DNA of 64,000 nucleotides from Thalia democratica (taxonomy: Eukaryota). This document shows positions 12,235 through 64,000 of this stretch, piece by piece. Positions within the stretch are counted from its first letter, which is position 1, and each line of letters begins with the position of its first letter. The position numbers were made by a program, and so were the translations under genes. Location: contig OZ241832.1 of the NCBI GenBank assembly GCA_965202585.1, positions 23,870,001 to 23,934,000 on the forward strand, in the 5' to 3' direction. The notes under the pieces were generated by a model that saw only the letters and a program-made list of their open reading frames with translations, made no database searches and was not told the origin of the DNA.

Positions 12235-12384
12235 AAAAATTAACTAAAAATAAATTTTTGCTCAGCGGGACCAACTTACATGCTCGCTGGCCACACAATT
12301 TTAATTCGCGGGCCGTATTCAATTCATAAAATAAAGGTGCTCGCGATCCGCAGTTAGCTCGCGGGACACATCTGCCGACCCCTG
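12235..12384. mobile_element. hAT terminal end (element lies to the left)
   Basis: Ends in TGCCGACCCCTG with CTCGCGGG/GCGGGCC subterminal motifs. Confidence 0.7.
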
Positions 12385-19335: not shown

Positions 19336-19343
19336 AATACTTA

Positions 19344-25820: not shown

Positions 25821-28800
25821 ATGAAATTAGTCTTTTTACTGTTCTCACTTCTCGCCCACCTCCAATGCGACGGGGACGAAACCCCAACAAGCGGCGGTCT
25901 CCCTTCCCGCGGTCTGCCCGGAAAGCGCGGCCAGAAGGGAGAGAGCGGAGCAGATGGGCTGAGGGGATTTACCGGAAAATCCGGCAAGCAGGGCGTGAAA
26001 AGTCGGTTGAAAATTGGTTTTAGTTTTAGCCAGTTTAAAAGCTTTTTTTTTACACACATGTGTATTTGATAGTTTTCTAAATATGTTTTCAACTTACTTT
26101 TATACTCTAAGTAATTAAAATGTTTTTTGATCTTTTTAAAGTTTTGATTTATACGATATAGTTTAATGTTTGTTCTCTAATATTGTTTTTTACATCAATG
26201 TATACTTGATAGTCTTGTGTTTTTAAACTAATGTGTTGTATTCTAAATGCTTTTAAGCCTATTTTGTTCTTAATACGCTTCGATTTAAAAGGTATAAACA
26301 CAAAATATATGTTTTTAAATAATATATCATAACTAAATCAGGAATAAAAATTATTTAGTTAAGTACAAAAATTTATTATTAAAATACATTTTCAAATCTC
26401 TAAGAAGAGTTATTATGAGTTAGGTCTACCTTTATTTGTAAAACTTTACACTATACTCTACTTTGTTATGATGTCATTTAGCTTAGAAAACTGATCATAA
26501 ATAAAAAGACAAACAAATTGTTGATAATTTTAGCGATTTTTTTGTTTTTAAGTGAGCCTGGTATTATTATAATAAGCTGTAACTTACTGACGATCACAAG
26601 AAATTTTACATTTCATGTGTGAAACAGCTGTATAAATTATAGTTTTTATATAATTAGATAAATACGTATAAATATATACATTAATCAAAATTTTAAGTTG
26701 TAAATAAACAATATTGAAACATTCTCATCTCTAGGAAAGCCTTGTGCTGTAAAAGACATTGAAATCAAGAATGGAAGTATAGGTGACATCATAGGCAATC
26801 TTATCCCAACCGGTACAAAGATATCTGTCGTTTGCGACCCTGGTTACCACCTTGTAGAAGAAAATCCAGTTTGCCAAGACGGAACTTTTTCAAAAACAAG
26901 CAAAGTTATAGATATTTGCCAACGTTCGTAACGTTATTGTTTAAAGTTTAAATAACTATAAGAATTTTGATAAATTTACTATTAAGACAGATTTACAAAT
27001 GGAAAGTCTAAACCAAAAAATTAAAAACTAAATAGTAGTTAACTTGGCTTCATAAGCTAGGTTTTGTAAAATTTGTTAACTTTAAGTTGGAATTTACTTA
27101 CAGTTTTAAAGATAGACATACTTTTCAAAACTTGTAAATATTTTTTAGTTAGTAGAGAATCATGAGTTTCAAATATCATGAGTTTCAAATTTATAATTTC
27201 ATGATAAAAACAATTGTTTTGTAAAATTCATTTATGCAATAAGATTTACAAGACACACATCTTAAAAAAAACTAGATATATTTCGAGCAATTGTCATCAG
27301 TAAGGTACTAAGCACACAAGATATAAGATTTTACAAACTTATATAGTAACTAACTAATCAAACAATCATAAAGTAATCAAGAGTTTAAAAAAAAAGACAA
27401 AGGCAATTAGTAAAAATTAAAATCAATTATGTTAACTTACGTTATAATTAATCAACAGTAAAACTAAACATCGATAGATTTAAAACTGCACTTATAAAGT
27501 ATTACGAAAATAAAGAAACGGTATAGTCAAAATCTTTTTGCTTAAATAAAACATGTTTTCTTAACAAAATACAAATAGCTTACAATTTAATCAAATCGAA
27601 AACATTACTACAAGTTTTAAAATTTTTAAATCTATTTATATTTAAAACTACTTGAACATGTTGAACTATTAACCAAATTTTCTGCAATGTGTGGACGTTT
27701 AGATGCATTTTTAACCTTGACCGGTATATCATTTTTCGTTTCTGAAAAACATAAGTATTTCTATTTTATATAAACAGAAATATATCTAGTTTTATTTAAA
27801 CTTTGTGTCTTGTTTATCTTATTGTATAGTTACTGGTCACTTATGTTCAAATACATTTTACTCGTTCTCAGCATTTGAGTATACAAAAGTAATTTCTAGT
27901 TAAAGGGCTGTAATTAATTACCAACTAATTTTATTTAATTTTTTTAAACCTAACATTTAATTTTATTATAGAAGCATATAAACACATAAAATAATTTTAT
28001 CACTTCAAAAACAACAAAGTATATCGACTAACAACACTTTTATACATTAACTGCACTTAATAAGAAAATATTTATAAACAATCTATAAATTTTTTAATTT
28101 AATTTTAGCTACATTACATGATTGTAATAATGTAAAGAAATTCTACCCTGGCGCTCAAAATGGTGTTTATACTATAAAACCCTATGAAGATGTTACACAA
28201 AACTTAGAAGCTTTTTGTCAGTTCGACTCTGATAATAATGGGTGGATAGTCAGTTTTTTTGATGTTTTCTAAACTAACAAGAAAATCTCATTTTTAGTGT
28301 ACTATTTTTATGCTTCACCCTTTTTTTTCCCAATATTAAAACCGAGCCATTGAAAATCGCAATATAGTTTTATTTAATGAAACTTACACTTTATATACAC
28401 AAATTTAAAACTGCGTAACTGCATAGTTTTTTTTTAGCGTATAACATTATTATGTTTGTAGAAGATTATAAAATTAATGCTAATTCTTTGTACAGTGTTG
28501 TACACTTGTATACAATTAATAGTAATTCGTTTTAATAATTTTAGATCAGTTTAAAATCAGAAGCGACTCATTACATAACTCTGTACACTACTTTTAAAAC
28601 GTTTGTTATATAACCTTGTGTCCAGGTCTTACAAAAAAGGACAGACTCGTCAACGAGCTTCAAAAGAAGATGGTCGGTTTACGTCACGGGGTTCGGTGAG
28701 AAAACAGGAAACTACTGGCTCGGTTTAGTTAACATTAGTGTATTTCGTTTGTACATTAATGCAATATTGCTGTTTGTAACATAAAACAAAGTTGAGCAGT

Positions 28801-30410
28801 TTGTCTATTGGTTTACTTTAACACAAATATGATTCGTTCGTAAATTGTTGCAACAAAACTGTATTTGATGATGAACATGTAGTTGATTAAAATTAAATTT
28901 TATTTAGTTGTTAAAGTTTCAGTATATACACATAATTATTTTAAAACAATATTAATATTGTACAAAACAATGAAAATTTAATTAAAAGGGTTGGAGAACA
29001 TGTACGCACTTCTGAAAGGAAGGGACTTCGTGCTTAGAATCGAGCTTGAAAAACTTAATGGAGAAACTGCATACGCCGAATATGAGTAAGAATTTTTATG
29101 AATTTTAAACACAAACAAAAAATATAAATTAAAACAAACTAGCCTTATAAACTTTTTAAATATAATTAATAATTATTTAAAAATTTCGATCATGCTAAAA
29201 AATGTCATTTTACAGAAAATTTACACAGAACAAAATTTACAAATATAAAGGTTGAAAAATAGTATTTTTAAAATTGATTAATAATACTAAAAAATTTTTT
29301 TATAACTTCAACACACTTAAAAATATTTTTTCGTGTCGAAGACTTAATAATGCGTAAACCAAATCGTACACAGTATTATGCCAGTATTGAAACTTACAAT
29401 TTATACTAGCTTTCTCGTTTGATTATTTCTAACTTAGTAACTTATACCACTAATCGAGGAAAAGAATGTTAGAATAGTTAAAAAAGAATTGTTTAACATT
29501 CCGTTTTAATAGTTTTATTATTTTAGTGAGTTTTACCTAGGAAGTGAATCTGAGAAATTTGCTTTACATGTTGGCCAGTACTCAGGAACTGCCGGTAAAC
29601 ATTTTTATTATATTTTTTAATTTTTACTGACAACTTAAATTCGTTTCACTAAGTTTTGTTCTATAGTTGAATGAATGATCATAAAAAATCATTCCTTTGT
29701 AAAGTTATAGTGTTTGTTCTCAATATAAAGTTTAATTGGTAAATTCTGATATTAAGAATAGACATTTAGCAAAAATATTTTATTTTTTTTTTACAACAGG
29801 CGATTCGCTAGCTTACCACAATGGAATGAGATTTACAACCAAAGATCAGGACAATGACCAGTATTCAGGTAAGTATTATATTGCGTAGTTATAAAATAAC
29901 AATTCAGTATACTCAAATTATTTTGTATGAATCTTATAAATTCATTAGAGTTTTAGATTAAACAATAAAAAAAATAATTTAACTAATAAACTATTTACTA
30001 ATTTGTACTCTAATATAACATGCTAAACAATTTTCTTATATAATCAAACTCTCTAATTTTTAAATCGAATTGTGCCACCGTTTACGGTTTAAAACTTTAA
30101 GATTAAACAAAAAAAAACACTTCAAAAAACAACTTATATACTATTTACTATTTCAAATATTTTTAATATTAATAATAACTAATAACCTTTCAATCAAACT
30201 CATTCCTTTATTTAAAATATTTTTGAAGGTAATTGCGCCACCGTTTCTGGAGGCAGAGGAGGTTGGTGGTTTAAAACTTGCAAGTATTCAAACTTGAACG
30301 GGGAATACCAAGACCCGAGTAAGAATAACTACAGAGGTTTGTATTGGTACCATCTTAATGAACACCATTCCCTCAAAACTTCAGTTATGATGGTGAAGAG
30401 AAAAAACTAA
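25821..30410 (+). CDS. Secreted ficolin-like fibrinogen-related protein: signal peptide + collagen + sushi/CCP + FReD; join(25821..26001,26735..26923,28109..28248,28626..28722,28989..29085,29527..29594,29800..29868,30229..30410), 340 aa
   Basis: All introns GT-AG with compatible phases (1,1,0,1,2,1,1); total 1023 nt = 341 codons. Signal peptide MKLVFLLFSLLAHLQC. Nine Gly-X-Y triplets (GLP GKR GQK GES GAD GLR GFT GKS GKQ). Four-Cys CCP exon PCAV...VVCDPGYHL..PVCQDG...DICQ. FReD motifs DC..GVYTI..FC..NGWI/VLQKR..GFG..YWLG..LRIEL..GTAGDSLAYHNGMRFTTKDQDND..NCA..GGWWFKTCKYSNLNG..MMVK. Confidence 0.93.
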
Positions 30411-31400: not shown

Positions 31401-32217
31401 TGTAAATATAAATACATCAGTAAATTATTCATCGCAGTTAAGAGTCAGAGTGTTAAGAATATACAGTTTACCTTCAACTAGGGTTTACAAAGAACATTTT
31501 TATAATCAGTAATTTGTTAGAATTAGAAAAATAACACTATTAATAGATATTTGACGTTAAAAGGTATTTAAATTGTGTGCAACTCGATAACCGAATGGTT
31601 CTTCGTGCACCAGTTCCCAGAACTAAACATTTTTGGCGTCTTTTTTTTCGTTTGATAAACTATAGCTACAATACCACCCATTTACTAGTCTAACTAAACT
31701 TAATATTTTGCCTCCTCACTAACTTTTGCCCATGATAGCCAAAGGAGCGTTGTCGATCATTTTGGGAAACACTGCTTCATATAAAACAAGTTTTTTGGAC
31801 TGAAAGTATGGACGCCCACACAAGATGGATTAAATAACTTGTTTAAATATACTTTTATATTTTCGTTACTAGGTAGTTTTGTTTATCGAAAATATTCATA
31901 AGTTTAAAGGTTTAAAGCAGTTTTCAGGCTTATAGTTAAATACATGTTTTTAAACATCATTTGGTCGTATTAATATTGTAAATAACATCAATTTTCTTTA
32001 CAAGCTTTACATAGGCTTTTCAAGATAAATAAGTGAAAACATTTTGCTAATTATATGTTGTCATTAAAATTGTTCTATATCTTAAATGGTGATCTACCGA
32101 ATCCACAGAATAAAAATTCAGCCGAATCCGAGTCCAGTTACCTTAAATCTCTGAAATCCTCATGTTATTTTCACTACTAGTTTATTAATATAAATATGTT
32201 TGTGTGGTAAAGCAAAA

Positions 32218-32557
32218 GTTAAGATTAATTAATATGCCAAATACAGTGATTTACCAAATACAGATCTGATATATAACTATACTTGGCAAATTTTACCCTA
32301 AAACAGAAACGTATCAAGTTGTTTGAAACAAACAAAAAATATTTTATACTTGTAAATACATTTTTATTCAAAGAAACAGTTATACTATAATTAACATATA
32401 AAACATTATTATAAATATTTTTCAAGTAAAAAATAAATTTTGTTTGTTTCAAACAGCTTGATACGTTGCTGTTTTAGGGTAAAATTTGCCAAGTATATCT
32501 ATATACCAGATCTGCTATCAGTAGATCACTGTATTTGGCATATTAACTAATCTTAAC
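32218..32557. mobile_element. Foldback / MITE with about 125-bp inverted arms
   Basis: GTTAAGATTAATTAATATGCCAAATACAGTG...GTTTGAAACAAACAAAA (32218-32340) is the near reverse complement of TTTTGTTTGTTTCAAAC...CACTGTATTTGGCATATTAACTAATCTTAAC (about 32438-32557). Confidence 0.8.
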
Positions 32558-32669
32558 ACTTGTATTACTACACGTACATATTGATATTAATGAACAAATA
32601 GTGAAATATTAATACAGCATATCAATTTAGTAAAAACCTTTAGCAAATTTTGCTTAACGACATTTCTAG

Positions 32670-33039
32670 CCGCAGGCGCAACAATCAACAGCGGCAAGAC
32701 AAGTACCAAGAGAATTGTCACAAAGACACCGTACACCAGAAGAAATGTCACAAGGACAGCAAACACCAGGAGAAATGTTACAAGCACAACAAGCGCAAGA
32801 AGAAACGTCATTAGGACAACAGATACCAGGAGAAATGTCAACGGTAGAAATGTCGCGTGACATAAGAAGAAAAATTGTTAAGGTGTGGTCGATGAAGCAC
32901 TGCGTAGCGCCAATTCTCATCGCATTTCTGCTTGTCGGTGTTGCGGCTGCGGTTTTTTTTTTTTTTGGCGGGAAAAATCATTCTGGCGATTTGAACGTTG
33001 GCAATGCCTTAAACGTCACAGTGGAACAGAACGTTACAA
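32670..33039 (+). CDS. Exon of a type II single-pass membrane protein with 10-aa cytoplasmic repeats (rest of gene not located)
   Basis: Branch-like GCTTAAC and acceptor CATTTCTAG| at 32669. Open frame PQAQQST...; first in-frame ATG at 32745. Basic RRK..K precedes hydrophobic VAPILIAFLLVGVAAAVFFFFGG, followed by NHS/NVT/NVT sequons. Probable donor A|GTCTGA after 33039. Confidence 0.65.
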
Positions 33040-33646
33040 GTCTGAGTTTATTCAAATATTTTTATCATTTTTTTTTCTTTAGATAACGTTGTTAATTCTG
33101 TTTTTATTTTTAATACTTTTTTTTCTGATCGTAACGCAAGTAAATTTTGTTTTTGAACAAGAAAATCTCGCATGGTTGTAATAGTTTTTAATAATGCGTC
33201 AGAGTACAATGATATTTACTATTTTACTTTTACAACTTTATTGTCAATTTTTAAATCAGTACAGCTATGAAGGTTAAAAGTTTATATAAAATTTCCATGT
33301 CTAATCAATTTTATCTCTAGTTTAAACATTTGTTCTACACCAGCCTAAAGCTCAGTTGATATTTAAAAAAATCTATACAACAACAAAAGTACTTAAAATC
33401 AGATAAAATGTAATAATTGTTTCAGACGATGAAATAAACTAAAAGCGTCGATGTTTTACAAGTTCCAACAATTATATCAAAAATCTTAGCAAAAAGAAAA
33501 CTATTTAGAAACTTATACTGTATTTGTATTTCAATTCTAACAAAAAAAATTGACATCAGTCAAGTAAGTAAACTGTTAAAAGTTTACTTTTTGTTTAGAA
33601 TTTTAGTTGTATATCATTTTGATTGTAAGTGTTTAAAATTTTGTTA

Positions 33647-33725: not shown

Positions 33726-33884
33726 GCAAAAAAACAATGTTTTATTAAGGAATATAACTGCTGTGTATTATACAATACTTAGTAAATGCTCAGCTACTCT
33801 TTTTCTGCTCCGAACTTTTAAAACTTTTATTCACTTTTCAAAACATCGTACAAAGTCGACCTGCCTAAAAAACAGTTGAATCTT

Positions 33885-34335
33885 TTAAATTTATAGTTAA
33901 GTACATATGTTGTTTGTAATATAAAAGTAGAAACAATCACATAAACCAGCGCAACAATATCATAATTAATGGTTAAGTATTATTAAGATTTGAGTGTAAT
34001 TTTAAAAATTAGATTCTTTTATACGCAGCAGTAAAATAACTAAGAGCTAATTGTTTGTATCTGTTTGTTTAATTAAGATACACCTTATCTAATACTTATT
34101 ATGTACATACAATTAGTCTTATTTGAAACTAATTTAATAATTTATAATCCAAAAACTGATATCCATATACAACTAAAGTGTAAGTAAAAATTACTAAGTT
34201 TTTACTGTATGAGACTACAGGGTCATGACGTAATAAATGTAAATAGGTAAAAATAAAAAATATTACAAAACTACCTGAAAAATTGTAGACAAAAACGGTA
34301 TTTTGTAAGTGTCTAATTTAAAAGATGTCCAAACT
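33885..34335 (+). repeat. Dispersed repeat of about 0.4 kb, second copy at about 37450-37795
   Basis: Shared anchors in order: TACATATGTTGTTTGT, TAAACCAGCGCAACAATAT, TTATAATCCAAAA, CTGTATGAGACT, TGACGTAATAA, GTCTAATTTAAAAGATG. Confidence 0.8.
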
Positions 34336-37400: not shown

Positions 37401-39419
37401 GGGTTCTTTATTTGAGCTGTAATTACTACTTGAAAGTTTCATGTTTTAAACTTTTAATTTGATACATATGTTGTTTGTGATATAAAACTAAAACATTTAT
37501 TTAAACCAGCGCAACAATATGATAACTAATAATTAGTGTTATTCATTAATATATAAGTTGTTTTATCTAACTTAAAAATATATAGGAATTCAAAACAAAT
37601 TTAATTATTTATAATCCAAAACATAGTACGCATATACAACTGAAGTAAAAATTATTAAGTTTATACTGTATGAGACTGTAGGGTGATGACGTAATAATAG
37701 TAAATAGGTATAAATAAAATAAAATTAAAATTACTTGAAAAATTGTGGACAAAAACAGTCTGATTTATTAGAGTCTAATTTAAAAGATGCCCAAGCTTTT
37801 TGATACAAATTAAGATGTAATTATATTACTTATGTAAACGGAATACTTTAGAGTAGAGACAAGCCTAACAAAACTTAAACCTCAGTAAGTAATCTACTCA
37901 AGTACCTCAAATTTATAGAAAATTCTCCTGTATTATTTGAGAGCGTTAAATAGTTCACATAGTATTCGGCGCTGGAAGACGGCTTTCAATGTTTGTGCAA
38001 AAGTTTGCAGTGCGATTACCTCGTAAGGGGACAATCAAATTATAGTATTAAATTACAGTAAGTGGAGTGTTTATTATAAAACAGTACCAGACTGTCTACT
38101 ACAAAACTATGTAATTTGTAGTATGACACCATGGATACATACTATAAAACATAAAACTTTACTGTAATTCAATTATTTTTGATATCAAACATACATCTGG
38201 ATACTTACGAGTATATAGTATTAGATGGTAAGAGAAAAAATAACATACTAAAAGAATGTGCGTAGCTACTCGTACATCAAAAAAAAAATTAGGTGCCGAC
38301 CAGCATAAGAACGTGGCCTAAAGGACGGCTTTCGTTATTTGTGCAAAAGTCTTTAAAAAAATTTATTTTCATTAATCTCAAAAATTTCCCAACAACTTTT
38401 CACTTTAGGGAAATCCCCTATTGTGAAAAAATTGTGTAGCGGGTCTTTATAATTTAGTGCGTACCTTATGCGGGTGCGTACTTATTAAATCGCGTACCTT
38501 ATAGAAATAACGTTAATACATTGTTACAAACTAAACCATACTACTTCATGCGAATAACAAATCATTTTTTGTTCAAAATTTGTAACTACTTTTATCTTAA
38601 GTAGTTTTAAGGTCCGGCTGCAGTTATAACGTCGCTTCTGATTGGCTAATATATTACAATTTTTATCAATTTTAAGTTTGGAGTAATTAAACTTGTTTTT
38701 AATTTTATTTTTATGTATTTTGGTAAATGTTCTTAATTTTATGCTGCATTTTCACTGCACCTCATAATGTTATGAATGAAAACATATACAAAGCCTTACA
38801 ACTGCAGCCGACCCCACTTAAAATATGGCTTAACTTACCTTATTTAATTACTAAGATATTTAAATTTAAATAACCACTGTCTAAAACTATATTGTTTAAC
38901 CAATAAAATACAGTACCACTTGAGTTACTACACAATGTTATGAAATATCCAAAAGAAATATTAGTGATTTTATTTCTAAACAGTTTTTGACAGAGTTTAT
39001 TTGAATAAAATAGTTAACATGCTCGTATATGTATTTATTAATTATCAAAATATTCTTTGTTTAGAGTCTTTATTGTGACACTATCTACTAGTATGAGTGA
39101 TTAAACTACCAAAAAACGCTTGGAAATAATGCTGCACAATACATAGTATCAAGTTTGAGATAAAATAAACACCTATTTTAATTTATAATGTCACAATAGA
39201 AATTCCAGACAATGGTATCAATTTAAACTATTAGTAGTGTTCCAAAATAAAGTTTAGCATGTCTATATAACAATTATGTGTAGTCAGATAAAAGTCTGGT
39301 TTTGTCAGCTAGTCACAGTTTATTTATAATAACTCTGATAAACACTTTAGGGTTATCAACAATTGTTTCTGAATATTATTTTAATATATTTTTCTTTTAT
39401 TAGCTTTTTAATACACTCT

Positions 39420-40165
39420 ATGAAAATCGTCACCAACAAGAATGTCAGCAAAACCTCGTCCATTTTCATCGACACGAAAAAATTTAAATCGATCACTGGC
39501 GAGTAGTAACAAAACGCGATGGAAATAGCTGAAATCTTATCAAGGCTATTTACAAACGATGGAGATGATATTCAAACAGCGTTTATAAAGCTTTTTCGCA
39601 AAGTATTGGTGAAAGTCAGATCTCCTTATTTGGAATACAACAAAAGGATTGTTGAGCTGATGAAACTATGAAGGCGCACCGGCCGACACAAAAGAAGTGG
39701 ACAAGATAATAAAATAAATTTAAAGATTCCAGAACGTTTAACAAAACTTTTATGAAAAAGCAAATCGTGGCAACGGTGCTCAGTCGAACAGTAGTGAACT
39801 CTCGTACATGGACTGCCGCTAAAAAACTTGACGCTAACCTTATACCTTCAGTTGTAAGTAAAGGCCTTAAAAGATTCTAACAGTTCTACCGTAAAGCCGA
39901 AGAGAACAAAAGAGAAAAGCAGTTGTGGAGCTTTTTAACCAGCAAAGTACATTCATTTTCGAATAGTTGTTGAACGAGACTAAGTTTTCGGTGAAGGATT
40001 TAACAAAATACTTCGTTCTCTAACATATAAGTAGTCCAAAGTTCTTTTAACCGTTCCGGGAAAAATTTTTTCATTGATTTCCAGCTTTACAGTTAGCGAA
40101 GGTTTCGATCAGGAATCAGACAAGAATAAGGTCCAAATGGCTCATAAATCCTAAATTTAGCTGAA
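39420..40165 (+). pseudogene. Intronless, decayed cullin-homology (APC2/cullin-like) sequence
   Basis: Across stops and frameshifts: MEIAEILSRLFTNDGDDIQTAFIKLFRKVLVKVRSPYLEYNKRIVELMKL / EGAPADTKEVDKIIK / KDSRTFNKTF / TVVNSRTW / NLIPSVVSKGLKRF*QFY / KREKQLW / LFNQQSTFIFE*LLNETKFSVKDLTKYFVL / WLINPKF. These resemble, in order, APC2 RNVELLKLRFGE..MLKDMADSRRIN..ILSSEFWP..VP....L..Y...Y..R.L.W and cullin LLFN...TFEEI...T.....DL...F.VN..F, as recalled from memory. Confidence 0.62.
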
Positions 40166-43100
40166 AGTATGTTTAGGATATTCAAGGTTTATTTAGTAAT
40201 AGGTCAAATTACTTATGAATAAACTTCTTCATATTTATATAAATTATGTTTTTTATACATACATAACTTCTGTCAAAAAAGTATTTCGTAAGTATAGAAG
40301 TATATTAACTAACAACTCAAGTTATTTTCACTGTCGTGACACAAATATTTATAGTAGTAGCAAGTTTTTAAGAATACTATACTAACTTTATATATAATTT
40401 ATTTGTAGTACTAAAAAATTAATTTAGTTACTAACTTAAACTATCATCTTGTTAACAGGTAAAGAAATACTAAAAAAATAATTAAAAAGTAGACTATAAT
40501 GTTAAACGCTAGAAACATTTTAAAACTATATAATTTTAGATTAATTAGTTCTAAGTTTATTTGATTTTATGAAAAAAACTTTTTTACTTGGTTAAAAAAA
40601 TCAAATCAGTTTATGTATATTTTTAGTATATAAAATAACTTTTTTACGTATAATATCTACTACTCTTTTGATTTTAAAACATTCATTTTTTTACCTTTTT
40701 GATGAATTGTTTAAGTTTTTTTTACAAATTAGATAAAATAATTCACACTTTGTTTGTTTTAGAATTTGTTAGCTTGAACTAACTAAATGCTCAATGAATT
40801 ATAAATATACTGAGTGCATTTATTTTGCTACATAAACACTAAATGCGTTGTAGATCTCATTACCGAACATTTCAACAAACAATTTTAATAGTAAACAAGT
40901 ATAGCAGACTATAAAACTTTGAAGTAAACAAGTACTTTGTAGAAATAAGAGCAAAAATATTTTATTTATTTAATTCTAAGTACTAAGTTTGTATTATGTC
41001 TGTTTATTTCAGTAATGTGTTTAACAAATTTAATATTTTAAATTTTGTAGTAAAAAAATAACTTCAGCAGGCTTCGGCAAACGATTATATAACTATTGTT
41101 CGATATCTATTGATATAAAATTTTGTTTATTTAAGCTAAGAACATGTGCTCGCTAAAATCTAAATCAGAGAGCTTACTTATAGGTTAAAACTATTTTTTG
41201 AGTTTTAAAAAACTTTCCATTGATTGTTAAACGTCAATTAATAAACATAAAAACTTATTGAGTTTCTATGTTTCCTTATTTCATTAAATTTAAAAAATCA
41301 AAAATTATTTTAATTAAATTAATAAAATTATTTTACATTTTGTAGACTAAAGTACTGTAGTCAGTTGCAAAAAATTTAAAATCTATTTTTCATAATATGT
41401 ATATTATTAAATTATCAATAGTCATAACCTGATTATTAATGAATTTTATTTACAGGATTATTAATGTTTGTTCCTTCACAATAGCAGTAATAATAAATAA
41501 TTAAACACTTTTTTGTAACATAATTTCTGTATGAATATTAAAATACAGTGATTTACATAAGTCAAGAATTTAGTTGTAATTTTCCGCATTAAAAAAATTA
41601 AAGTATATAAATAAAAAAACTTTATTGTAAATTAACTAAAATAGTTAAGCATTTTAAATTACTCAATATTTGTAACTACTTGGTCATTTGAATAAGAAAT
41701 AAATCAAAATATACTATTTTTTATCTGAAGGCTCTTAATAAAATCAGTTGTATCTAGAAGAGCTACTAGTAAGAGATTAGAATTAATTTGTTTTTAGGGT
41801 AGAGTATTGTTTTTACTTCAAATGAAATTTAAGTTTTAAATAAAATTTGTGATCTTCATTTTTAGTAATTTTGTATTAAGTTCGTTAAGTATATTAAGGT
41901 GACTAAGGAGGAACTTAATTAATATTACTGTTTAGTATTATTTTTTTAATAAACTTTCTACAAAATTGTATTTATGTTTAAGATTTGACACTGAAGAAAA
42001 AAAATATTATAAAGCATATGGTAAAATTTTTGCTTTCTTATAGCTCAGAATCTAAAAAGTAATGCCTTTTTATAATAATTATGTGCTTATTAAAGGTTGA
42101 ACTTCAATATAAATAATAAAATAAAACGGGATAAAGGTAGACTGCCTCTTTTGATTACAAAAACCAGACATGATTTGACTAAACCGAAATTGTAAAAACG
42201 GTTTAAGCTACCAAAAATTTCAGTCTCAGTTTTTTACTATAGTCTTTATTTTATTGAATAAGAATTGAAAATGTTTGTTTTTTAATAAACGAAAGATCTT
42301 TTTGAAGTGTTTGTAAAATACTGAGACTGATTTTTTTGATGATTCTTATTGTTTTTTATATTTGTTTATTCAATATACTTTATATTTTGAAATTTACTTT
42401 AACGCAGGCTAACAAAAATTTCGTTTTAGCATTAAATAGTGTAAATTTTGTTTAGATGTAATAAAGTTTTTAGTAATACAGTTGAGCAAATTTAAGGTTT
42501 TAGTAGTTAGAACTCGTTAAGAATCAGAAATAATCTGAAAATGAACTTTAGTTGTATATTATTAGCAATATCAGTTCTATCTAAATTAGGTTGAGGTACA
42601 AGCTGTTGGTTAAAATAAATTAGGGTTGCTCTCTCCGATGGTTTTAAAATCTTTTACATAATTCCAAATGTTAATGTTTGTATTTTAAGTATATTAGGAA
42701 AATATAAATGTAAAGCAGATCTGTGTTCAGTTATGTTTTTTTTTTTTTGAACTACAATGTATTAAAACAATTTTATTATATCTTTTTTTAATAATTTTTT
42801 TCTACCTATACCAAATTTAAGTACTAAAATCTGTTGTAAAGACTAAAAAAATTCATTTAAATCATCAGCTTTATTTTTGTAGTCTAATGCTTGTTAAAAA
42901 TTTTACCTCATTATAGGTAAAATTCAATGCTATAAATATACAATAATGAATAAAACTTTTTTTTAATAAAAACTGATGAGGAAAATAAAAAACTTACACT
43001 AGTTTTATTTTAAGATAGTTGGAGCCAGTTCTTTTCAAGTTCTAAATTAAAAAGAGAGACAAAAAAGATGAGAGAAAATTTTTATCACTAGTGGGCGCTC

Positions 43101-43173
43101 TTATTTTCTTCTAGCCGAGGTTCGTAACTTTAGGATATAATGAGACACATCTTCAAAATGTTATTCATAGACA

Positions 43174-43336
43174 GTTGCAGCAAGATAGCTAGAAAGTAAT
43201 AAAGGACGTCCCAGCTAAGGTAGCTAAAGAAAAGTGCAGGTTTCATTGTAAGGAAAGCTTTAGCATCTACGTGTACAAAATACTCAAGCAAGTACACACT
43301 GATACTGGAATCCTCAGCAAAGCTATAAACATCATA
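43174..43336 (+). pseudogene. Histone H2B-like relic (N-terminal half)
   Basis: Reads [45 protein letters not shown], matching H2B [30 protein letters not shown]. Start codon lost. Confidence 0.9.
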
Positions 43337-43846
43337 GATTATTTAGAGGTAGGAGCCGATATTAATGTAAAGCAGAATTGTGTTTATTTAGCAAAGATTT
43401 TCTTTATTTAGAAAGTTTATGAATTTTTATTAAATACTTTTATAATAGTTTTACACCTGTATTAAATTTAGGTACTAAAATCTTTTGTAAAGATAGAAAA
43501 AGTTCATTTTCATCATTAGTTCTATTTTATTTATTTTGCGGAGTTGGCATTTTTTTTTTAAATCAATGTATTAGAAACAATTTTATTACATTTATTTTAA
43601 TAAGTTTATTCCCACCTATATAAAATTTTTGTACTAAAGTCTTTTGTAATTAATAAAAAAGTTCATTCTAACCATTAGCTTAAATTTAGTAGTCTAATAC
43701 TAATAAAATTTTGCTTTAATATAGGGTAAATTTCAATACTATAAATATACAATAGTGAATGAAAATTTTTTTTAATAAGAATTAATGTGGAAAATAAAAT
43801 AATTATACTATCTTGAGACACATCTTGCAAAACTTGTTCATTGACA

Positions 43847-44124
43847 ATGGCAGCATCCAAAGCTAGCAAGAAAGTAGTTAAGGACGTCCCAGCTTTAGGT
43901 AGCTAAAACAAAGTGTAGGTCTCATTGTAAGGAAAGCTTCAGTATCAACGTGTACAAATTTTTCAAGCAAGTACACCTTAGTTACTTGATTTTCAAGCGA
44001 GGCCTTGAACATCATGAAGTCTTTTGTCAACGATATGTTCGAGCGCATTGCAACCAAAGCTACACATTTGGCTCACTACAACAAGCGTTTAGCAGTCGCA
44101 AAAATTAAATCTGGTGTTCGTCTA
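43847..44124 (+). pseudogene. Histone H2B-like pseudogene (near full length, lacks C-terminal helix)
   Basis: MAASKASKKVVKDVPA(fs)..KESFSINVYKFFKQVH(fs)[32 protein letters not shown](del)..IKSGVRL. Confidence 0.9.
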
Positions 44125-44529
44125 AGAAACCTGTTTGGTTTTTACCTAATTCAAAAATTCAAAACTTTAGGGTGTCAATTTTCCATTCAAAAATTGATTA
44201 ATTTGATAAAATAGGATAAATGAATTTTAAGTTAAATAACCATTGATATTTGCTGTAGGCAGTTGGTAATATCAATTGCTTGTAGATGAGCTAGCAATAA
44301 GAACCTAGTTTTAATTAACTATTAAGGGTAGATTTTTATTTAATTAAAGTCAAGCTAGACAGACTAAAATGTTTTAGCTATTATGCATTTTCTTTTTTTT
44401 TATTCTTAAGTTATTGTCAAACGACTAAAATCCTATGTTTTAACTGCTATTTGATTAAATTTTCTTCTATTTAGTGTTTATTTGTATTGTAACTAGTTTA
44501 ATATTTCAGATACTTAAACAAAACAAAAT

Positions 44530-46120
44530 ATGGAAAACGTTTTGAGACTAACCATTGGAAAGAATAACATTGATGAAGGTTTATTAAAGGCACTTCTAAT
44601 AAGCATGTGGCCTAAAATCGAGAAAATTCACATTACTCAAAAAGCCAGTTATGTGGTATTCTCAACTGTTGAAGAAGCAAAACAAATGCTGGATTCCAAA
44701 GCAATGAATCTTGAAGGTTACTTGGTAAAAGTAGAGAAGCTAGATAAAAAGACAAGAAAAGATTTCAAAAGTTTAAGCAAGATTGCTTCAACTGAAAATA
44801 AATGTGACACGCTATCAAATGAACTTACCTGTTTACAAACGCAGATTGAAACAGAGACTGTTCCTGACAAAAGTAATCAACACAATAATAAAAAGAAACG
44901 TGCCTACTCATCGGTAAGCATTTATATGATACATCAAAGTATAACAAAGTAAGATAAAACATCATAAAATTGTTTGTTTTCTTAATTATTTACAGTTTTT
45001 TAAGTCTATATAGTTTATGACTTTGGTTAAAATATTAGAAACAGACTAAAAATTTATAATATTATATTTAGCATATAGTAACGCTTAACACTGTCTTATA
45101 TACAATAGAAATAGGAGTATAATTGATTTTAATTTTTCAAACTATTTATTTTTATAGTTATTACGAAACAATACCAAAACAATGACAACACCCAAAGTTA
45201 AGAATAGACGTATAAGTAAAAACTATACTCAGTTGTTTTCAAAATTAAAAACAAACAAGTATCTTGAAGAAATCGAAACATCAAAATGGTTGAAATGTTT
45301 AAACAACTCAATGAAACAACATACTTGGCACCAAAATGTTATGCGAAGTTTTGTTAAAAAAGACCAATTTGCTTCGATTCAAATGAGTTGCAGTGATCTT
45401 TGGTCAATAGCAAACGAACAAAGCTACATAGAAGATCCTGTTTTAGACGCAGTCCTAAACGACAGTTTTAAGGATCACAAACAAATAGGGTTTATTGAAA
45501 CAAGTGTTTTTAATGCAATTGAAAACCTTTACTTCAGTGAAACGACTGTGACTCCTTTCAAAAATGATAAAGACGCGTACGTTGCCGTCAAGAACATAAA
45601 CAACAATCACTGGATATTTGTTTTCCTCAACTTTTTAAACAAAACACTTTATGTTGTGGATCCAAGGCGGAGTGATGAGCAGATAGAAACAGCAAGAAAA
45701 GTTATGAAAGCTTTTATACAAGTGCACCATAACGAAATCAATGCAAGTGAAACATCGAAATGGAACTTTATGAGCGATGAATGGAACTTTGATTGTATTC
45801 AGAACAATATTCAAAGAGATTGTGTCAACTGCGGTATTTATTGCATGGAATACGCTTTGAAAGTTAAAAATGATTTTCCTATTATACCTTCGTACTTACT
45901 CATTGAAAGTAACTTTAATGATAAAAGACAGTTTTATACCGCATTGTTACTAAACGTTTCAAAACCCAAGCTTTCAGTCGAAAATGAAACAATAAAAGAA
46001 GAAGAAAAAGAATTCATAGAACATCCTTATTATGTGAGTAAAACTGTAGATGAAGACGGATTAGGATTGGTTATAACATTAAAAAGAAAAAAAAACTTGA
46101 AAAAAGAAAGTAGAATCTGA
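44530..46120 (+). CDS. RRM-like + Ulp1/SENP (peptidase C48) fusion protein, copy 2; join(44530..44913,45158..46120), 448 aa
   Basis: Donor TCG|GTAAGC after 44913. Acceptor TTTATAG| at 45157 reads LLRNNTKT in frame into the ATG at 45182. H/D/Q/C catalytic residues intact. 31 aa differences from copy 1 (6 in exon 1, 1 in the linker, 24 in the 312-aa ORF). AATAAA at 46190. Confidence 0.85.
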
Positions 46121-47375
46121 AAGAAATATTTTTTAACTGGTTTATTTTATTATATTTTATGAAATTTAACTCTTACTCATTTTCGCTACAATAAACAAAA
46201 CAATTTACCAAAATAAACAATACTTGTTTTTTTTATACTTTTATAGTTTGTTACAGTAAGACAAAGAATTGCACGACATAAAGTATTTTGTTTGGGTTTA
46301 TTAAACGAGTAGTCAAATGTTTTAGAAGCAAAATAAGTTTAAACTTAAAACTACAGCTATAGCTATAGTTAATCTAGCTAATTTTTATATGTGCTAGATA
46401 CCAGTAGCGACGCCTTGTAATGTTTATAGGGGTCGCGGAAATACTATGCAATCAGGCATATCCCCATATAATTGTCTTTAGCTTTGAGTGCTTCGGTTCT
46501 CGTACTCTGCACTTAATGACTTGCTTGTTGTGAAGGACTGTTTTATAAATTTCTAGCGTAGCCTGCTTATTTGATTGCTTCCCTACGCCTGCCTGCTAAG
46601 TCGCTACTTTTTCAGACTTCTAGCTGACACTGTTTAATTTGCGTGTTGCTGCTGCTTAGCTATTAGTTTCAGTCGCTCGATCGCTTCTGTTTGATTTTCT
46701 GTTTGAATTTAGTACATATTTTATGTATAACAGCCGAAAACTAATTTTGAAATTCACATGGTGCTAAACTTTATCAAGAATTTTGCTGTTCATAAGAATT
46801 CTGTCATGAAAATTACAAAACATTAAAAATGCAGCTGACACAGACTGAGCTTTTATCAAACAATAGGAAAATTTCAAATATAAAGTAAAAAAATTTAACA
46901 AAATAGTATTTAGCAGGAAAATTAATGTTTGAGCTTTATAATAAAGTTTTTCAAAATTAGTTTGACGTGGTATATTAAAAAGCAGGTCTCTATTTGAAGC
47001 AGAGTCCTCAAAAGCTTAAACTAAACGACTAAAACTTTTTAAAACTTTATTTATTTTTTTCAGGTGTAGCAACAGCTGCAGCGTTCTGCGCCAGGCCTCT
47101 CTATTGATTTTTTACATAAAAAATTAAAAATACTTGATTATGCTTCGTAAATTAATAATACTTTTATTTTTTTTAATGTTAAAAAATATCTAGAAATCCT
47201 TAGTCAAATAACTATGAATTTATTTTAGTTTATCAAAATTAATACTTAAATAGTGACTTAATACTCATTTACTTTTTATACTGGTTCCAAATGTCAAACC
47301 TGACTTTTAAAAGGGAACGGGTCAGAAAAGCACGTGCGTCATTTTAGTAAGGGGTAATTTTTTTGCACGAATTTA

Positions 47376-47440
47376 CTTTAGCACAAAGTGACACTTAAGT
47401 ATGGAGTAACATTTTAGCACAAAAAAAAAACTTTAGCACG
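47376..47440. repeat. Shorter copy of the 18-bp TTTAGCACAAAGTGACAC minisatellite
   Basis: About 3-4 units, versus about 9 at 3349-3506. Confidence 0.7.
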
Positions 47441-50400
47441 GCTGTCTTTCTTCCATAATGCATAACATTTTTACTGTTATTTTTAAAAATCTAAAAACAT
47501 ATCATGCAGTATGTAGACTAAAAGTTAAACCACTTTAAATATGTTACAAGTTAAATCTTTAACTGGAAATTCATGTTTAATTGAAAGTAAAACATTTTAT
47601 TTAAAAGCAAACTGATTTTTTTTAATAATAATATAAGACTAAATTATAAGTTATACTAACTCAATTTACACTAGATAATCTGGAGCTAAGAATAAACAGC
47701 AAAAAAAAGTCTAAGGCGTTTGTAAGGTAAATTTGAAAATTATACTATATATTATGGTAAAAAATAGGAAATTTAGGGGGCCACAAACTGTAAAAGGGGA
47801 AGCCACTTGGCCACAATTTAAAACTTATTCTAGAAATTTTGGAGTTGATAACAAAATGCGAAAAAATATTCGTAGGTATTTTTAATTGTATTTTAAAAAC
47901 TTGTACTAAATATCAAGTAAAAATCTTATAAAATTTAGTAGGTCACAAGGAAATAATTTAAAACTTACACTAGATACTTTAGAGTTGATGATGAACATAA
48001 CAAAATGTCTTAAGTGACTTTAGTAATAGTTTTTGGAGAATTTTTTTGATGCGGCTATAGCTTTTTAGTTTCATTAAAGGCCTTAACAAAATAAGTTTAG
48101 GACAACCTAGTTTAGGGTAAAAATTTGTTCACATAATTATACCTACAAAGTGCTAACAACATTCAGCTTTTTTTTGATAAATTTAACAAAATTTTTGTTT
48201 ACTGTCTCAAAATGTTTTGCATTAGAGCTAAAGTTAAAAAAAAAACTGTTAGCTAGTGAATCAAAACAAGCATGCAAACATAAAATATGATTATTTTCAA
48301 GTATTTATTAACAAAAGTCTAAAAGTCGCTATAAACATACTTTTAAAGCTGAAAACCACGTTGCAGATCAGAAATATTTTCGAAACAGAAAGTCTAATAA
48401 ACTGTGACCATGTGCTTTAACCAGGGACGTAGCTAGCTCTAAAAAGTTACAAATCTGCAAAAAAAAATCTAGAATAATGTGTGATGACGTCATGACGGGA
48501 ATAGAGTAGTTTTAACTACCTTTAATTTTATATGAAAGGTAGCAGTTTTGTTATAAGCTTAAAAAAAATAGAATGTTCAAGTATAATGAATAACTGAATA
48601 CAAGGCAAGTTTTACTGCTCTTGACCCCCTCTAATTCTTTATGTGTTGAAACTTTTATTAGCCTATAAAACCGTTCATTTAAAATAAAAATGTTAATTAA
48701 GAAATTAACTTTAATATTATTACTGATAGACCTAAAATATATAACTTTGAAAACAGTTTCCCCACTTCAGAAAATATTTGCAAAAATTGTTGCTTTTATT
48801 AAAACAAAAATTAAAATTTTAGGAGTTGAATAAAAAAGAAAAGGATATAAAATAAAAAATTTCACAACATTAGATAAAATTCAGATGTATAATTACTTTA
48901 TTTTGTCAAAAACGATTCATAAAGAAAAGAAGAGTACACGTCTTTGTAAATGTTATTACTTGCTTTGGATGGATAAAGATTTAAGCTGTAAAAAAAGAAC
49001 TAAATATTTTCTTATTGAAAAAAGTACTTAAATAAAAGCTGTAAACAAGAATCAAACTTTTTTTTACAAAACAAACTTGTTAAATAAAACAAATTGGTTA
49101 AATAACTACAAACCTTGAATGTTAAACATTAATATTTTTTAGATACATTGTGAAACATAAAAATAAATTCAAACATAAACATTTTTAAACATAAAATGTA
49201 TTAGTTTTTTATTTTTTAAACTTGTTATGAATTTATAATACAACTATACACTTGTTAGAATAAATATAACTAACTTATTCTTTTAATCTTAGATTGAAAA
49301 GTTATATAAAACTTATTTTAAAACTTTTTATCATTTATTAAACATTATTTAAAGAATTAAACTGATATACTTTTTTATATAAGTAAACCACTCTAAAATT
49401 TATAAACTTATTTTAAAACAACAGATTCATTCAATATTCTAATACTTTTAAAGAAAATATAAAATAAAATAATCTTCATATTGCAAACAACAATGCTTTT
49501 AGAAAAATAAAATTTACAGTAATATTTAAAAACAAGTTGAAACAAACTTTATTTTTTACATATTTGTCAGAAAACATCATTCAAATAGCTTTTTCTTGAA
49601 GTACTTATCAGAAACTCATTGTAACAAACTGAACTTCAGATTGGTTGACTTTGTTAATAGCTTTGAGTGTCAATGGTATCAAGTGGGTGGTTTTACTTTC
49701 AAATTATAATTGCATAATTTTTACCTTAGAAAACTTAAGTTTTAAACTTAGTTTTAAAAATCTGTGAAACAACTAAATTTGTTAAAATCCACACATAGTG
49801 TACCAAGTATACAGTAGTAATACAAATAAAACTTAAAAACAATTTTCAAAATGTAAAGCTAACTAGAAAATACAAATGTACTAATTTAATGTTTTTTTAA
49901 TTTTGTAAACTACTTAAAAATTGTAAATATAAAGATAAAAAAAGACAGAGATAATGAAAAACCTTTGAAAGTTGGGAATAAAACCAAAAACTCTCAAAAA
50001 ATTCTCATTTAATAAACCAATATGCATAGAAAACAAACTCATTGTAAGCAAATAATATAACAATACAAGTAAAATAGGTATTAACAACAGCTCAACCCTA
50101 TGACCAACACCAATTCCAAGATTTTATTTTTGAATTTTTCTTCTTTTTTTTTAGAATAAGACTCACTTTTCAAATTTATCAATGTTTTTTTTTTACAAAA
50201 TTGGTTATAAAATAAAAATTTATTAAAACTAGCTAGCAAAATCTCATTCAAATATAGAAAAACATCTGTTATGACATTATTAATCTTTAGTTTTTCATAG
50301 ATAAAAAAAAAACTATACTGAGTCAGCCTGAGTTCAAAAATAAAACTCTAAATATCCTAGATTTATCCAGTATACTTTGAGTGTGTGGCTACAATGTACA

Positions 50401-60900: not shown

Positions 60901-61495
60901 AATTCCTAAAATAGTGTTTTTGAAGTAATTTTTCATGTATAATTTGATGACCAACTAAACTTTCTACTTTGTCTTAATTTAAAATTTCTAACAATTACAA
61001 AAAGAACATCTATTGTAAATTTCATAGCAATTATTAAACTTGAGATCTTAATCTAATTCCAAAAAACAAAACATACATAAAGTTAACGTTATAAGCAGAT
61101 CCAGCTTTAACTAAGTTATTGTAAGCAACAAAAATAAATACTTAAAAATTAACACTATTTGCAAGTACATATTTAGTCAAGTTTATTAAAAATTAACTAG
61201 CTCTTTAAAGATTTAACCTAAGTAGTAGTCTTGGAAACAATATAAAGCCAAATCTTTTATTTTCATGCTATATTTAATTTAATTTATAAATTAAACAAAT
61301 CTTTTTCATGCAATCAAAAAAGTTGTAAGCGATATTAAAAACTATTTATTATATTTCTAGCACTATATAAAGATATGAAAGAACGGAAGTACTAAATATA
61401 ATCTAATTTTATAACATTTTTTTAATTAAGTAATATTTGCCATTATAAAAACTTTTTATAAATTTCTCTACCAATAAGATTTGAAAGTACTAAAG

Positions 61496-64000
61496 CAGGG
61501 GTCGGCAGGCGGTTGGTGTTCGCGGGCCAAATTTCAAGTTTCCAAAATCTTTGCGGGCCACAGTTTTAGTTTAAGTGACCTTTAAAAAAATTTTGGTTTT
61601 AGTTTTAGTCACACTAAAGAAAGTTTTACTTTTATTCAGATTATTATTTTAAGTGACTTTTAGCTACACATGAAACGCCTGTTTAAACTATACATATTTA
61701 TTGGAATACAATTTACATTGTAAATATACTTAAGTTTTAACAAACCACGTACTGTCTTTAACAATAAACAAGTTAAACTTGAAGTTTTAATTATTTTACT
61801 TACAATCTAGTTTTCTTTGAAAACGAACTTTAAAAACATTTTTGGGGCACTTCTATATATTTTTTATATAGTGAACCGCTTTTTCATATTTTAAAAATAT
61901 TAATTTTCAAAAAAAAATTTTGCTTTTTAATCTCAAAAATTCAGTAATTAATTGAATAAATAAAATTTATACGTATTTGTATGGTAAAAATCTAAAAAAA
62001 AGTTTTTAACATAATTAACACCCAAATACTTTAATAAAATATCTTATTAATATTAAATTAGTCTTTTACATGGTTGCTATTTAAAAAGCAAAAATGACTG
62101 AGTTATATCACAACTGTCTAAGTTTATTAAAATTTTAAAAAGCTAAAAACTTGCATTTACTCAAATATAAACACCTAACTTAAATGTTATCATTATAAAA
62201 AGTACATAATGTGTAAGTAGGCTAGAAAAAAAGAAGTTAAACTACAGTCATAAAAACTATTATAAGAATTCGAAGATTTAATCAAACTCTTTAAAATAAA
62301 AGTTTTAAACACACCTGAGTTTTGAAAACTTGTCTTAAACAGGTTAACCTAGTCTGAGTTTTTCAAAATTTAAAACTAGCCTGTTTAGAACAAAGTTCAC
62401 AAAATAAAGAGACAAAAATGTTTATCATTAATTAATTAAATATATTTAAAAATGTATATTATAAGTCAGTTTGAATGGACAACTAAGTATTTTAATAATT
62501 TTAACTAAAGTATAAAAATACTTTAAACCATTAATGAAGTAGAAAAACTACTTTTTTATTGAGCATTATAGCAATTGTTTATCTGCAATAAATTTTTACG
62601 TTTAAAAAGAGTAAGTGTGAAATTTAAAGCAATGAGAATTAAAAAACGTTAGTTAAGAGTTATTGCAAGAAACGAAATTTAAAAAAAATTGCCTAAGTCA
62701 GTTTCAACAAAGCACATAACTATCTTTTGATAACTACAGAATCATCAGAAAAAATAGGTTGAGGCAAGATATAAAATAGCAAAAGGCATAACTAAAAGTG
62801 ATATACCGTTTGGTGTTGAAAACCCTTTATTAAGAAAATGTGTTGGCGGTAGTAAAAAAAAGTTTAATTCTTCAATGGCAACAAGAACTCAAGTTTCGTG
62901 TTTAGAAGATGTCTGAAGATTATAAAGCTGCAAAAATCGAATCAATCTGTTAAGATGAGAGCACTGATACAACATAGACTGCTTATCTGAGGATTTTTAT
63001 TAGAGGTGTTTTTAATAATTTTTAAACTTTAGAAGAACTCCAAAGTTTAATTTTAATGCAAAGCACAAAAATAGATAAATACATTTTTTTAGCAAAGGTG
63101 CAATGCACCAGTATAAAGGGTGATTTTAAGTTTTGTAAACAATGTTGCTACTGCAATTATTGCTAGATACATGATGGTAATATGATATTGTTTAAAACTA
63201 GGTCTTGAACTTATGTTGTTTACTAATTAACCTCATTTATTAATAAACCAGGAAGTATTTTGTGCGAAAAGAACATGTTTAAAAAATTATTAAATTAACA
63301 ATTTAAGTAGTGAACACATTTTTGTCAAACAAACTTTATAACCGACAGTTTCAAAAAGTAGTAGAAAAAAAAAAGTCAATACGTTGACCTAGTTTACTTT
63401 TGGCTTGTTCTTTGTTTAGTTTTTATTTGATGTTATAACGATTCAATGAGTTAAGAAATGAAATAGGGTTTTCTCTTAAAGCTAAAAGTATAAATATTAC
63501 TGCTTATAAAGATAAAAACTTGATACTATTTTTAGTATTTCTGAAATGTCTTACATCCCAAGTTAAAAACCTAACTTGGTATTACAAGGAAAAAAAAAGT
63601 TGTTCTATGAGATACGGTTCAATACCATACTTTTGAAACAAAGTTAAGACTATAGGGGTTTCAAATAATAAAAAAAAAACTATACAAAATTCAACAACCG
63701 TTAAAAACATCAAATTAAAAACAGATTCTGACTTTTTAGATGCAATTAAAAACTAATCGGACGAATTTTCCATATGATTTTTTGACCTTCAATTACTAGA
63801 AAATAAACTAAATCCTATAAAACTTCCACAAAAAAGTATGTTGATAAAGTGTAGCGCACATTTACAACCATAGTATAATACCTGCAATAGCTTAATTGAA
63901 ATTGTTTTTTTTTAAGATATTGAATACAATAGTTTATTAAGGACCGCGAAAGATTTACAAAAAAAACAAAAATTTCCAAAAAATAATGTTTGAAAATTAA
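61496..64000 (+). mobile_element. hAT (Charlie/SPIN/GTF2IRD2-like) element with decayed transposase; runs off the window end
   Basis: TIR CAGGGGTCGGCAG at 61496, same end as 10046 but inverted. Transposase relics: EARYKIAKGITKSDIPFGVENPLLRKC (about 62761), SIC*DESTDTT*TAYLRIFIRGV...LEELQSLI (about 62940-63060), PHLLINQEVFCAK (about 63230), RFNELRNEI and an FL..L...N..LQG-like segment. Confidence 0.9.

Follow-up and report, generated by a model that had tools for sequence, protein, structure and literature searches.

What kind of repeated unit carries a two-exon Ulp1-like protease gene beside broken histone H2B sequences in the genome of Thalia democratica is the question raised by the locus described here. 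The window, by which we mean the whole 64,000-nucleotide stretch analyzed, comprises positions 23,870,001 to 23,934,000 of contig OZ241832.1 (GenBank assembly GCA_965202585.1, forward strand), and all coordinates below count from its first letter. A sequence-only reading had described, between 39420 and 47612, a cassette of cullin-like, H2B, and C48 protease sequences and had proposed that a large mobile or virus-derived element lies behind it. Our analysis favors, at about an even chance, a transposon-derived and possibly still mobilizable multi-copy Ulp1-like gene unit. As far as the DNA allows prediction, the repeated unit is young, multi-copy, and at least 3.4 kb long, with the two-exon gene as its sole working part.

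Comparison of the window with itself by blastn reveals three co-oriented repeat blocks, designated copy 1, block B, and copy 3, the fullest form being copy 3 (41118-47668, ~6.5 kb). Copy 1 (1-3397) is 94% identical to positions 44038-47421 of copy 3, with a weaker tail reaching up to 3734 in the one and 47668 in the other. As block B (12442-14312) is only ~79% identical to copy 3 (41118-43356), it is far older; it ends 5' of the position of the protease gene and so lacks that gene. These two blocks account for the recurrence that the sequence-only reading had reported at 1-3680 and 12440-14310. The upstream part of copy 1 is cut away by the window start, which places its left end beyond the window.

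All parts of the unit are read on the + strand. Copy 3 begins with a non-coding left arm (41118-42701), which is ~79% identical to block B 12442-13400 by self-blastn and boundary alignment and holds no stop-free stretch of at least 55 amino acids. A 556-bp segment of copy 3 (41640-42194) is missing from block B, through either insertion or deletion. The arm is followed by a ~655-bp unit in tandem. The first of the pair, U1 (42702-43356), joins an upstream region to the 5' half of H2B, as identified by PDB matches, while the second, U2 (43359-44014), runs into a full-length H2B relic, together spanning 43359-44140 and recognized by Pfam Histone as well as by H2B chains in the PDB. By self-blastn, U1 42702-43297 and U2 43359-43976 are 73 to 82% identical. 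Block B is an old truncated copy made up of the left arm, U1 with an H2B relic (~13995-14160), and the start of U2; since it shows the same U1/U2 junction and the beginning of the second unit, the tandem step is older than the split between block B and copy 3.

Downstream of the gene, the 3' flank (46121-47421, 91 to 97% identical to copy 1 by self-blastn) ends in an array of an 18-nt motif (AGTGACACTTTAGCACA-like), present as ~4 units at 47336-47421 in copy 3 and ~8 units at 3363-3505 in copy 1 and absent elsewhere in the window. Scored per 200 bp, identity between the two copies is 91 to 99% as far as this array, then 82%, and then background; the corresponding tail of weaker similarity in copy 3 (47422-47668, ~78 to 82% before background is reached) has an uncertain right edge. 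Given that copy identity falls directly after the array, the array may be the right border of the young duplication. Within the window, the flanks directly outside the blocks match no other copy's flanks, and the wider downstream regions of copies 1 and 3 have one inverted repeat pair in common without colinear homology. The unmatched flanks indicate that the blocks are discrete insertions rather than parts of one large tandem duplication.

The gene consists of exon 1 (44530-44913), an open reading frame (ORF) of 128 codons ending at a GT donor, a phase 0 intron of 244 nt with GT...AG ends (44914-45157), and exon 2 (45158-46120, 320 codons plus stop). The predicted splice, from a GTAAGC donor at 44914 to an AG acceptor at 45156-45157, joins the exons in frame, giving 448 codons with the stop at 46118-46120. 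Copy 1 (1-3734), which opens with an H2B tail at 1-110 and continues through the gene into the 3' flank and the array, has the same exon-intron structure (exon 1, 512-895; intron, 896-1138; exon 2, 1139-2101), and the intron is also present in outside contigs L008 and L009. A look-up of the exact products of both protease ORFs in the window returned no record. An acceptor-like tttcag (44504-44509) follows a pyrimidine run 20 nt 5' of the exon 1 ATG; it may belong to an intron in the 5' untranslated region, in which case transcription would begin within or close to the H2B relic, or it may be a trans-splice site.

Exon 1 would encode a weakly RRM-like domain and a Lys-rich linker. It has no match to Pfam RRM_1, the best profiles being DUF4283 (E = 0.07) and RRM_fung (E = 0.09); its closest PDB matches are the RRMs of nucleolin (E = 0.08), and its only relatives are copies of at least 90% identity from the same species. 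We treat the term RRM-like as a reasonable guess, not a result. For the RRM-C48 gene that had been proposed here, the two intact exons, the in-frame GT-AG intron, and the C48 fold are upheld, whereas the RRM label is not, as no RRM profile match is significant (E = 0.07 to 0.09).

Exon 2 of neither window protein matches Pfam PF02902 (Peptidase_C48), the sole signal being a weak one to YopJ (PF03421, E = 0.0045), and C48 membership therefore rests on relatives and fold. A HMMER scan of 1.84 billion cluster representatives yields 73 relatives of exon 2 at an E value of ≤0.001, and Peptidase_C48 is matched at an E value of ≤0.01 by 36 of the 47 sequences in the family alignment. The HW, DP, and Q.D..CG columns (H151, W152, D168, P169, Q219, D221, C225, and G226) are nearly invariant in this alignment, and all of these residues are kept in both window copies. 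The catalytic residues are His151, Asp168, Gln219, and Cys225, with codons at 45608, 45659, 45812, and 45830, respectively. With the 47-sequence alignment, AlphaFold2 models exon 2 at a predicted local distance difference test score (pLDDT) of 87.1 and a predicted template modeling score (pTM) of 0.80; the alignment is required, as the single sequence gives an unusable model (pLDDT of 35).

Foldseek comparison of this model with the PDB returns SENP2, SENP3, Ulp1, SENP1, SENP7, SENP5, and Den1/SENP8 (E = 3e-9 to 1e-7). The top 35 matches are all SENP, Ulp1, or Den1 chains, with SENP2, SENP3, Ulp1, SENP1, and SENP7 in the lead and Den1 only 26th, so that the fold is not closest to SENP8 and lends nothing to the suggested link between cullins and NEDD8 through a NEDP1/SENP8-type enzyme. 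Phaeovirus "ubiquitin-like cysteine proteases" align over the full length (E = 1.5e-9), and giant-virus Ulp1-like proteins are matched too; as fold matches, these viral proteins do not surpass the cellular SENPs. Judged by its modeled fold, exon 2 is predicted to encode a true Ulp1/SENP-fold C48 (clan CE) cysteine protease with a complete His-Asp-Gln-Cys site. From fold and residues, the product is most likely a nuclear enzyme that acts on SUMO or a related ubiquitin-like modifier as an isopeptidase or processing protease, with the N-terminal RRM-like module as its presumed targeting domain.

Both gene copies keep their 128 plus 320 open codons, stretches that by our own estimate would arise by chance at ~25 to 30% G+C with probabilities of ~1e-5 and ~1e-12, respectively. 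Divergence between copies 1 and 3 is 3.6% in coding sequence, 7.4% in the intron, and 4.5 to 6.6% in the flanks, and exon 1 differs by only 1.8% versus the 7.4% of the intron. The ratio of non-synonymous to synonymous substitution rates (dN/dS) between the copies is 0.48, or 0.40 for exon 2 alone. When changes are polarized with the outside contigs described below, the private branches of the two window copies carry 13 synonymous and 30 non-synonymous changes (omega of ~0.54, one-sided p = 0.049), a pattern that marginally fits relaxed purifying selection on each copy. As the sequence-only reading had held, the protease gene alone appears functional in the block: it is the only gene with intact frames, in both copies, and its activity is predicted.

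In sharp contrast to the gene, no H2B sequence in the unit is intact. The two H2B relics reported earlier on the + strand are found at ~43175-43342 (relic 1) and 43848-44140 (relic 2). The piece 43193-43408 of relic 1 matches H2B chains in the PDB (E of ~1e-9), and the piece 43990-44211 of relic 2 matches both H2B chains (E of ~2e-10) and Pfam Histone (E = 1e-6). Relic 1 no longer has its ATG and breaks off near H2B residue 60; it and the third relic, that of block B, are truncated at the same point, the tandem-duplication junction, and the second half of the histone fold is gone. Relic 2, from an ATG at 43848 to ~44140, spans the whole histone; its frame shifts at least twice and meets stops past the AHYNKR motif. 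The H2B tail at the start of copy 1 is the remnant of a fourth. Copies with an intact H2B frame were sought in the window and in outside contigs L010 and L011, and all proved broken by frameshifts, stops, or truncation. The frame changes of relic 2 are common to L010 and L011, and its downstream stop to copy 1, L010, and L011. The lesions common to all copies show that H2B was dead before the copies separated and amplified, and the relics are thus unable to act as functional chromatin cargo; read from these lesions, the H2B fragments are passengers of the repeated unit.

The evidence for copies covers the window together with outside contigs from metagenomes and sequencing runs. Contigs L001 and L008, which carry exon 2, and L009 to L011, which carry H2B relic 2 and/or exon 1, are 95 to 97% identical to both window copies. 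L010 and L011 extend from within H2B relic 2 into exon 1, so that exon 1 has an H2B relic next to it in these two contigs as in both window copies; that the H2B relic and the protease gene travel as one duplicated unit is supported in all four. Over ~800 aligned bases of the H2B-exon 1 stretch in copy 1, copy 3, and L009 to L011, private sites number 14 in L011, 12 in copy 1, 11 in copy 3, 10 in L009, and 0 in L010, and a single site is shared. As nearly all differences are private, the sequences form a star rather than two allele groups, and the outside sequences are probably not alleles of copy 1 or copy 3. There are at least three to five lineages with almost only private differences, and the outside sequences appear to be further lineages radiating from a common L010-like sequence. 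A star is the pattern left by a copying burst, be it through transposition or through a source gene that is duplicated again and again.

Every close relative of the sequences studied traces to a Tara Oceans marine metagenome contig or to an assembly of one of two sequencing runs, which points to a marine, probably planktonic, animal as the source, and the traceable members of the exon 2 family likewise all lie on marine-plankton metagenome contigs or sequencing-run assemblies. Paralogous members occur as several near-identical metagenome variants, as in the P0004 cluster with its 7 members. P0002, a paralogue or orthologue with 57% identity to the protease, is encoded by identical ORFs on contigs L004 to L007, from four ENA assemblies of which at least two belong to Tara Oceans; the identity of these ORFs indicates that a second protease family member recurs across samples.

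The more distant relatives point toward transposons. P0049 (1,401 amino acids), for which a look-up returned no record, combines a MULE transposase domain, a region homologous to the query (E = 1e-8), and a PHD finger, while P0083 has a YqaJ-type nuclease joined to a C48 domain; a PHD finger is present in 9 of the 47 alignment members. Both Ulp1 and Ulp1-plus-PHD domains have been described from plant MULEs as well as from the Ginger1 and Mutator transposases of hydra and lancelet (PMC2836005), and a plant family of Ulp1-like genes amplified by MULE-type elements is attributed to Hoen et al. (2006) as cited in that paper.

From these observations a history of the unit can be proposed. An H2B gene beside the ancestor of the protease gene would have decayed, with its promoter and 5' half duplicated in tandem, and the dead H2B sequence would afterwards have been copied together with the protease gene. 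Since the copies keep the intron and flanking sequence, the unit spread as DNA. The protease itself would derive from the Ulp1-like branch whose members occur in DNA transposons (Mutator-like and Ginger1), either fused to them or borne by them and frequently alongside a PHD finger. Descent from that branch makes the most likely history one in which a Ulp1-like gene of transposon origin was amplified as part of a non-autonomous unit, in a manner that may be comparable to plant KI-MULEs.

The stretch called a cullin relic (39420-40200, readable on either strand) is single-copy in the window, where ~900 bp separate it from the left edge of the repeated block (41118); within the window it does not travel with the H2B and C48 parts. 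None of the 16 stop-free + strand pieces of at least 20 amino acids between 39400 and 40400 matches Cullin, Cullin_Nedd8, or ANAPC2 in Pfam at an E value of ≤1, and four + strand pieces match no cullin at an E value of ≤10 in the PDB, where cullins are well represented. The piece 39510-39668 has no relative in a set of 5.8 billion proteins; an importin-alpha match to it (E = 0.33) was dismissed as chance. When two short plant cullin stretches, unreliable in detail, were compared with the window by tblastn, the best 9 matches fell elsewhere. Colinear sub-threshold matches occur at 39842-39952 (15.4 bits, rank 135) and 40005-40139 (16.9 bits, rank 45), and by our rough estimate the chance of such a pair anywhere in the window is of the order of 0.2. 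Cullin-like motifs recognized by eye (such as F..FY then R.K.LW; L.RSL then KVLL..PGK) were not counted, as equal or better tblastn matches lie elsewhere in the window. The intronless cullin/APC2-like relic thus finds no support in Pfam, the PDB, or positional tblastn, and we regard the stretch as unrelated neighboring sequence of the repeated unit.

That this stretch is nonetheless a real, independent pseudogene, either a frameshifted relic of a cullin homology domain on the + strand or a MYND-finger relic on the - strand, is less likely than not, though by no means far-fetched. Its G+C content is somewhat raised (0.31 versus 0.22 to 0.26 nearby), its open stretches are unusually long on both strands (86, 73, 55, and 53 amino acids), the weak + strand cullin matches are colinear and in the correct order, and the - strand has a zf-MYND match (E = 8e-4). 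From its G+C content and open frames, the stretch may be the remnant of some gene. The zf-MYND match, however, is under the Pfam cut-off and without PDB support; the cullin and MYND readings are both below significance and mutually exclusive over 39629-39877, neither has a PDB match, and no related protein was found for the one piece searched.

These results leave the large mobile or virus-derived element, with a themed cargo of cullin-like, H2B, and C48 genes acting on ubiquitin-like signaling and chromatin, very improbable. Its three pieces do lie on the + strand within 8 kb, the phaeovirus proteases do align with the modeled fold over the full length, and cullin-like motifs are weakly colinear by eye and in sub-threshold tblastn. 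Against this, the cullin identity fails in a single-copy segment outside the block, H2B was dead before amplification, and cellular SENPs match the fold as well as the viral proteins. Scans with the family alignment found no relative of the protease among IMG/VR viral contigs or among JGI metagenome contigs, and Pfam found no integrase, polymerase (polB), capsid, packaging ATPase, or Rep/helicase among the stop-free window stretches scanned, nor any transposase; the search for such genes near the block, which the sequence-only reading had envisaged, thus came back empty for the scanned pieces. Contig L003 (5.7 kb), which carries a 34%-identical relative, lacks H2B, an RRM-like exon, and inverted termini. 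Within the window, then, the cullin-like piece is unlinked to the other copies, the copies number two to three, and no termini could be defined for them; any hint of further copies comes from the outside contigs. The theme of cullin, NEDD8, and H2B fails on testing.

An ordinary lineage-specific host gene family is a real possibility, though short of probable. An RRM-like/Ulp1-like gene would in that case have arisen beside an H2B gene, for instance at the edge of a histone cluster, and been copied by local segmental duplication without transposition. Several observations count in its favor and against a transposon-derived unit. All three copies are co-oriented within 48 kb, as expected from local duplication, and identity at the right edge decays gradually, with no sharp terminus. 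No terminal inverted repeat or target-site duplication is found around 38-50 kb, where inverted matches are AT-rich and at chance level, which agrees with the earlier statement that no such feature, transposase, or integrase could be assigned to the block. Visual inspection of the homology borders shows no Helitron-type end (5'-TC...CTRR-3' with a 3' hairpin), and Pfam detects no transposase or other mobility gene among the scanned window pieces. Both gene copies are intact under some purifying selection, and the dN/dS below 1 on the private branches is, if only marginally, more in keeping with genes of the host type than with transposon copies that have died. Relatives linked to transposons are remote (26% identity, E = 1e-8), a diverged population could have contributed the outside contigs as alleles or paralogues, and both splicing and expression of the gene are predicted from DNA alone.

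What speaks against a purely local host family is the star of differences among five sequences, which calls for more lineages than the two window loci, together with the lack of colinear homology outside the blocks. Moreover, the nearest relatives outside the family are transposon-type Ulp1 proteins, and paralogous members exist as several near-identical metagenome variants. For the transposon-derived, possibly still mobilizable unit, a more specific version can be formulated, which taken as a whole is unlikely: the unit would be a non-autonomous animal DNA transposon (Mutator/Ginger-like or of another class) with a selected Ulp1-like deSUMOylase fused to an RNA-binding-like module, plus a captured H2B fragment that may supply the promoter or 5' untranslated region. 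Hosts need SUMO marks for transcriptional silencing of transposons, and the protease could aid the element, for example by stripping the SUMO marks of host silencing.

The window as a whole is AT-rich (G+C of 0.20 to 0.34 per 2 kb), and Rfam detects no RNA gene within it. A ficolin-like gene, which marks the window as animal DNA, lies at 25782-30407 on the + strand, with a collagen-like exon (25782-26066), a Sushi exon (26704-26928; Pfam E = 3e-5), and fibrinogen-C exons (28078-28269, 28614-28781, and 30216-30407; Pfam E = 4e-5 and 3e-9). A 2.9-kb unit with no coding signal seen is repeated in tandem at 16443-22227 (92% identity) and preceded by part of a third unit (15299-15475). A 1.3-kb inverted repeat pair (8748-10052 and 61490-62775, 73% identity, 51 kb apart) has block B, the ficolin-like gene, and copy 3 between its arms; Pfam recognizes none of its ORFs, and the pair is probably two old copies of another repeat. 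A second inverted pair (5507-5887 and 11957-12353) has a G+C-rich core (72%), and its second copy abuts the left edge of block B. A foldback at 32169-32606, with 188-nt arms (86% complementary) and a 62-nt loop, adjoins a 138-amino-acid stop-free stretch with a hydrophobic segment (32670-33083), and a direct repeat pair of ~80% identity lies 3.5 kb apart at 33874-34335 and 37435-37797.

Ulp1-like proteases have been recognized on Mutator, Ginger1, and other transposons since the mid-2000s, and their role there is still unknown (PMC2836005). The locus described here offers a small, intact, apparently constrained, and recently amplified animal Ulp1-like gene with an added RRM-like module. Should it prove mobile or expressed, the gene would lend itself to testing whether deSUMOylases carried by transposons serve any function; should it be no more than a host gene duplicated locally, the family is an ordinary one confined to its lineage.

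With cellular SUMO/NEDD8 proteases (Ulp1, SENP1/2/3/5/7, and SENP8/Den1), the window protease shares the fold and catalytic tetrad, at a target-normalized template modeling score (TM-score) of ~0.7. It differs from cellular SENPs in sharing only 12 to 16% identity with them, in escaping detection by Pfam C48, in lacking an N-terminal region of the cellular SENP type, and in belonging to a small family (73 of the 1.84 billion cluster representatives). The Ginger1 and Mutator transposases of hydra and lancelet carry the same type of protease, and relatives of the window protein include P0049 and nine PHD-finger Ulp1-like proteins. In those transposases, however, the protease is a domain of the transposase, whereas in the window it is a separate 448-codon gene without integrase, transposase, or PHD finger.

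As in Pack-MULE and Pack-TIR elements, a dead fragment of a host gene, here H2B, is copied with the repeated unit (PMC8277862). Unlike in those elements, no flanking transposon ends were found, and the H2B sequence may be neighboring DNA swept along in the duplication rather than a capture. A survey of 100 animal genomes reported no Pack-MULE (PMC8277862). A further parallel is with KI-MULEs (Kaonashi) and the plant ULP-like genes, which are likewise a multi-copy C48 gene without a transposase that is diversifying and apparently amplified at the DNA level (PMC2836005, PMC8277862); KI-MULE is described as the only characterized MULE-duplicated protease gene and as likely non-functional (PMC8277862). 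KI-MULEs have long Mutator-type terminal inverted repeats and 9- to 11-bp target-site duplications, neither of which is found around the window unit. The window unit is further set apart from them by its marine animal host, its lineage-specific RRM-like first exon, and the H2B pseudogene that adjoins it.

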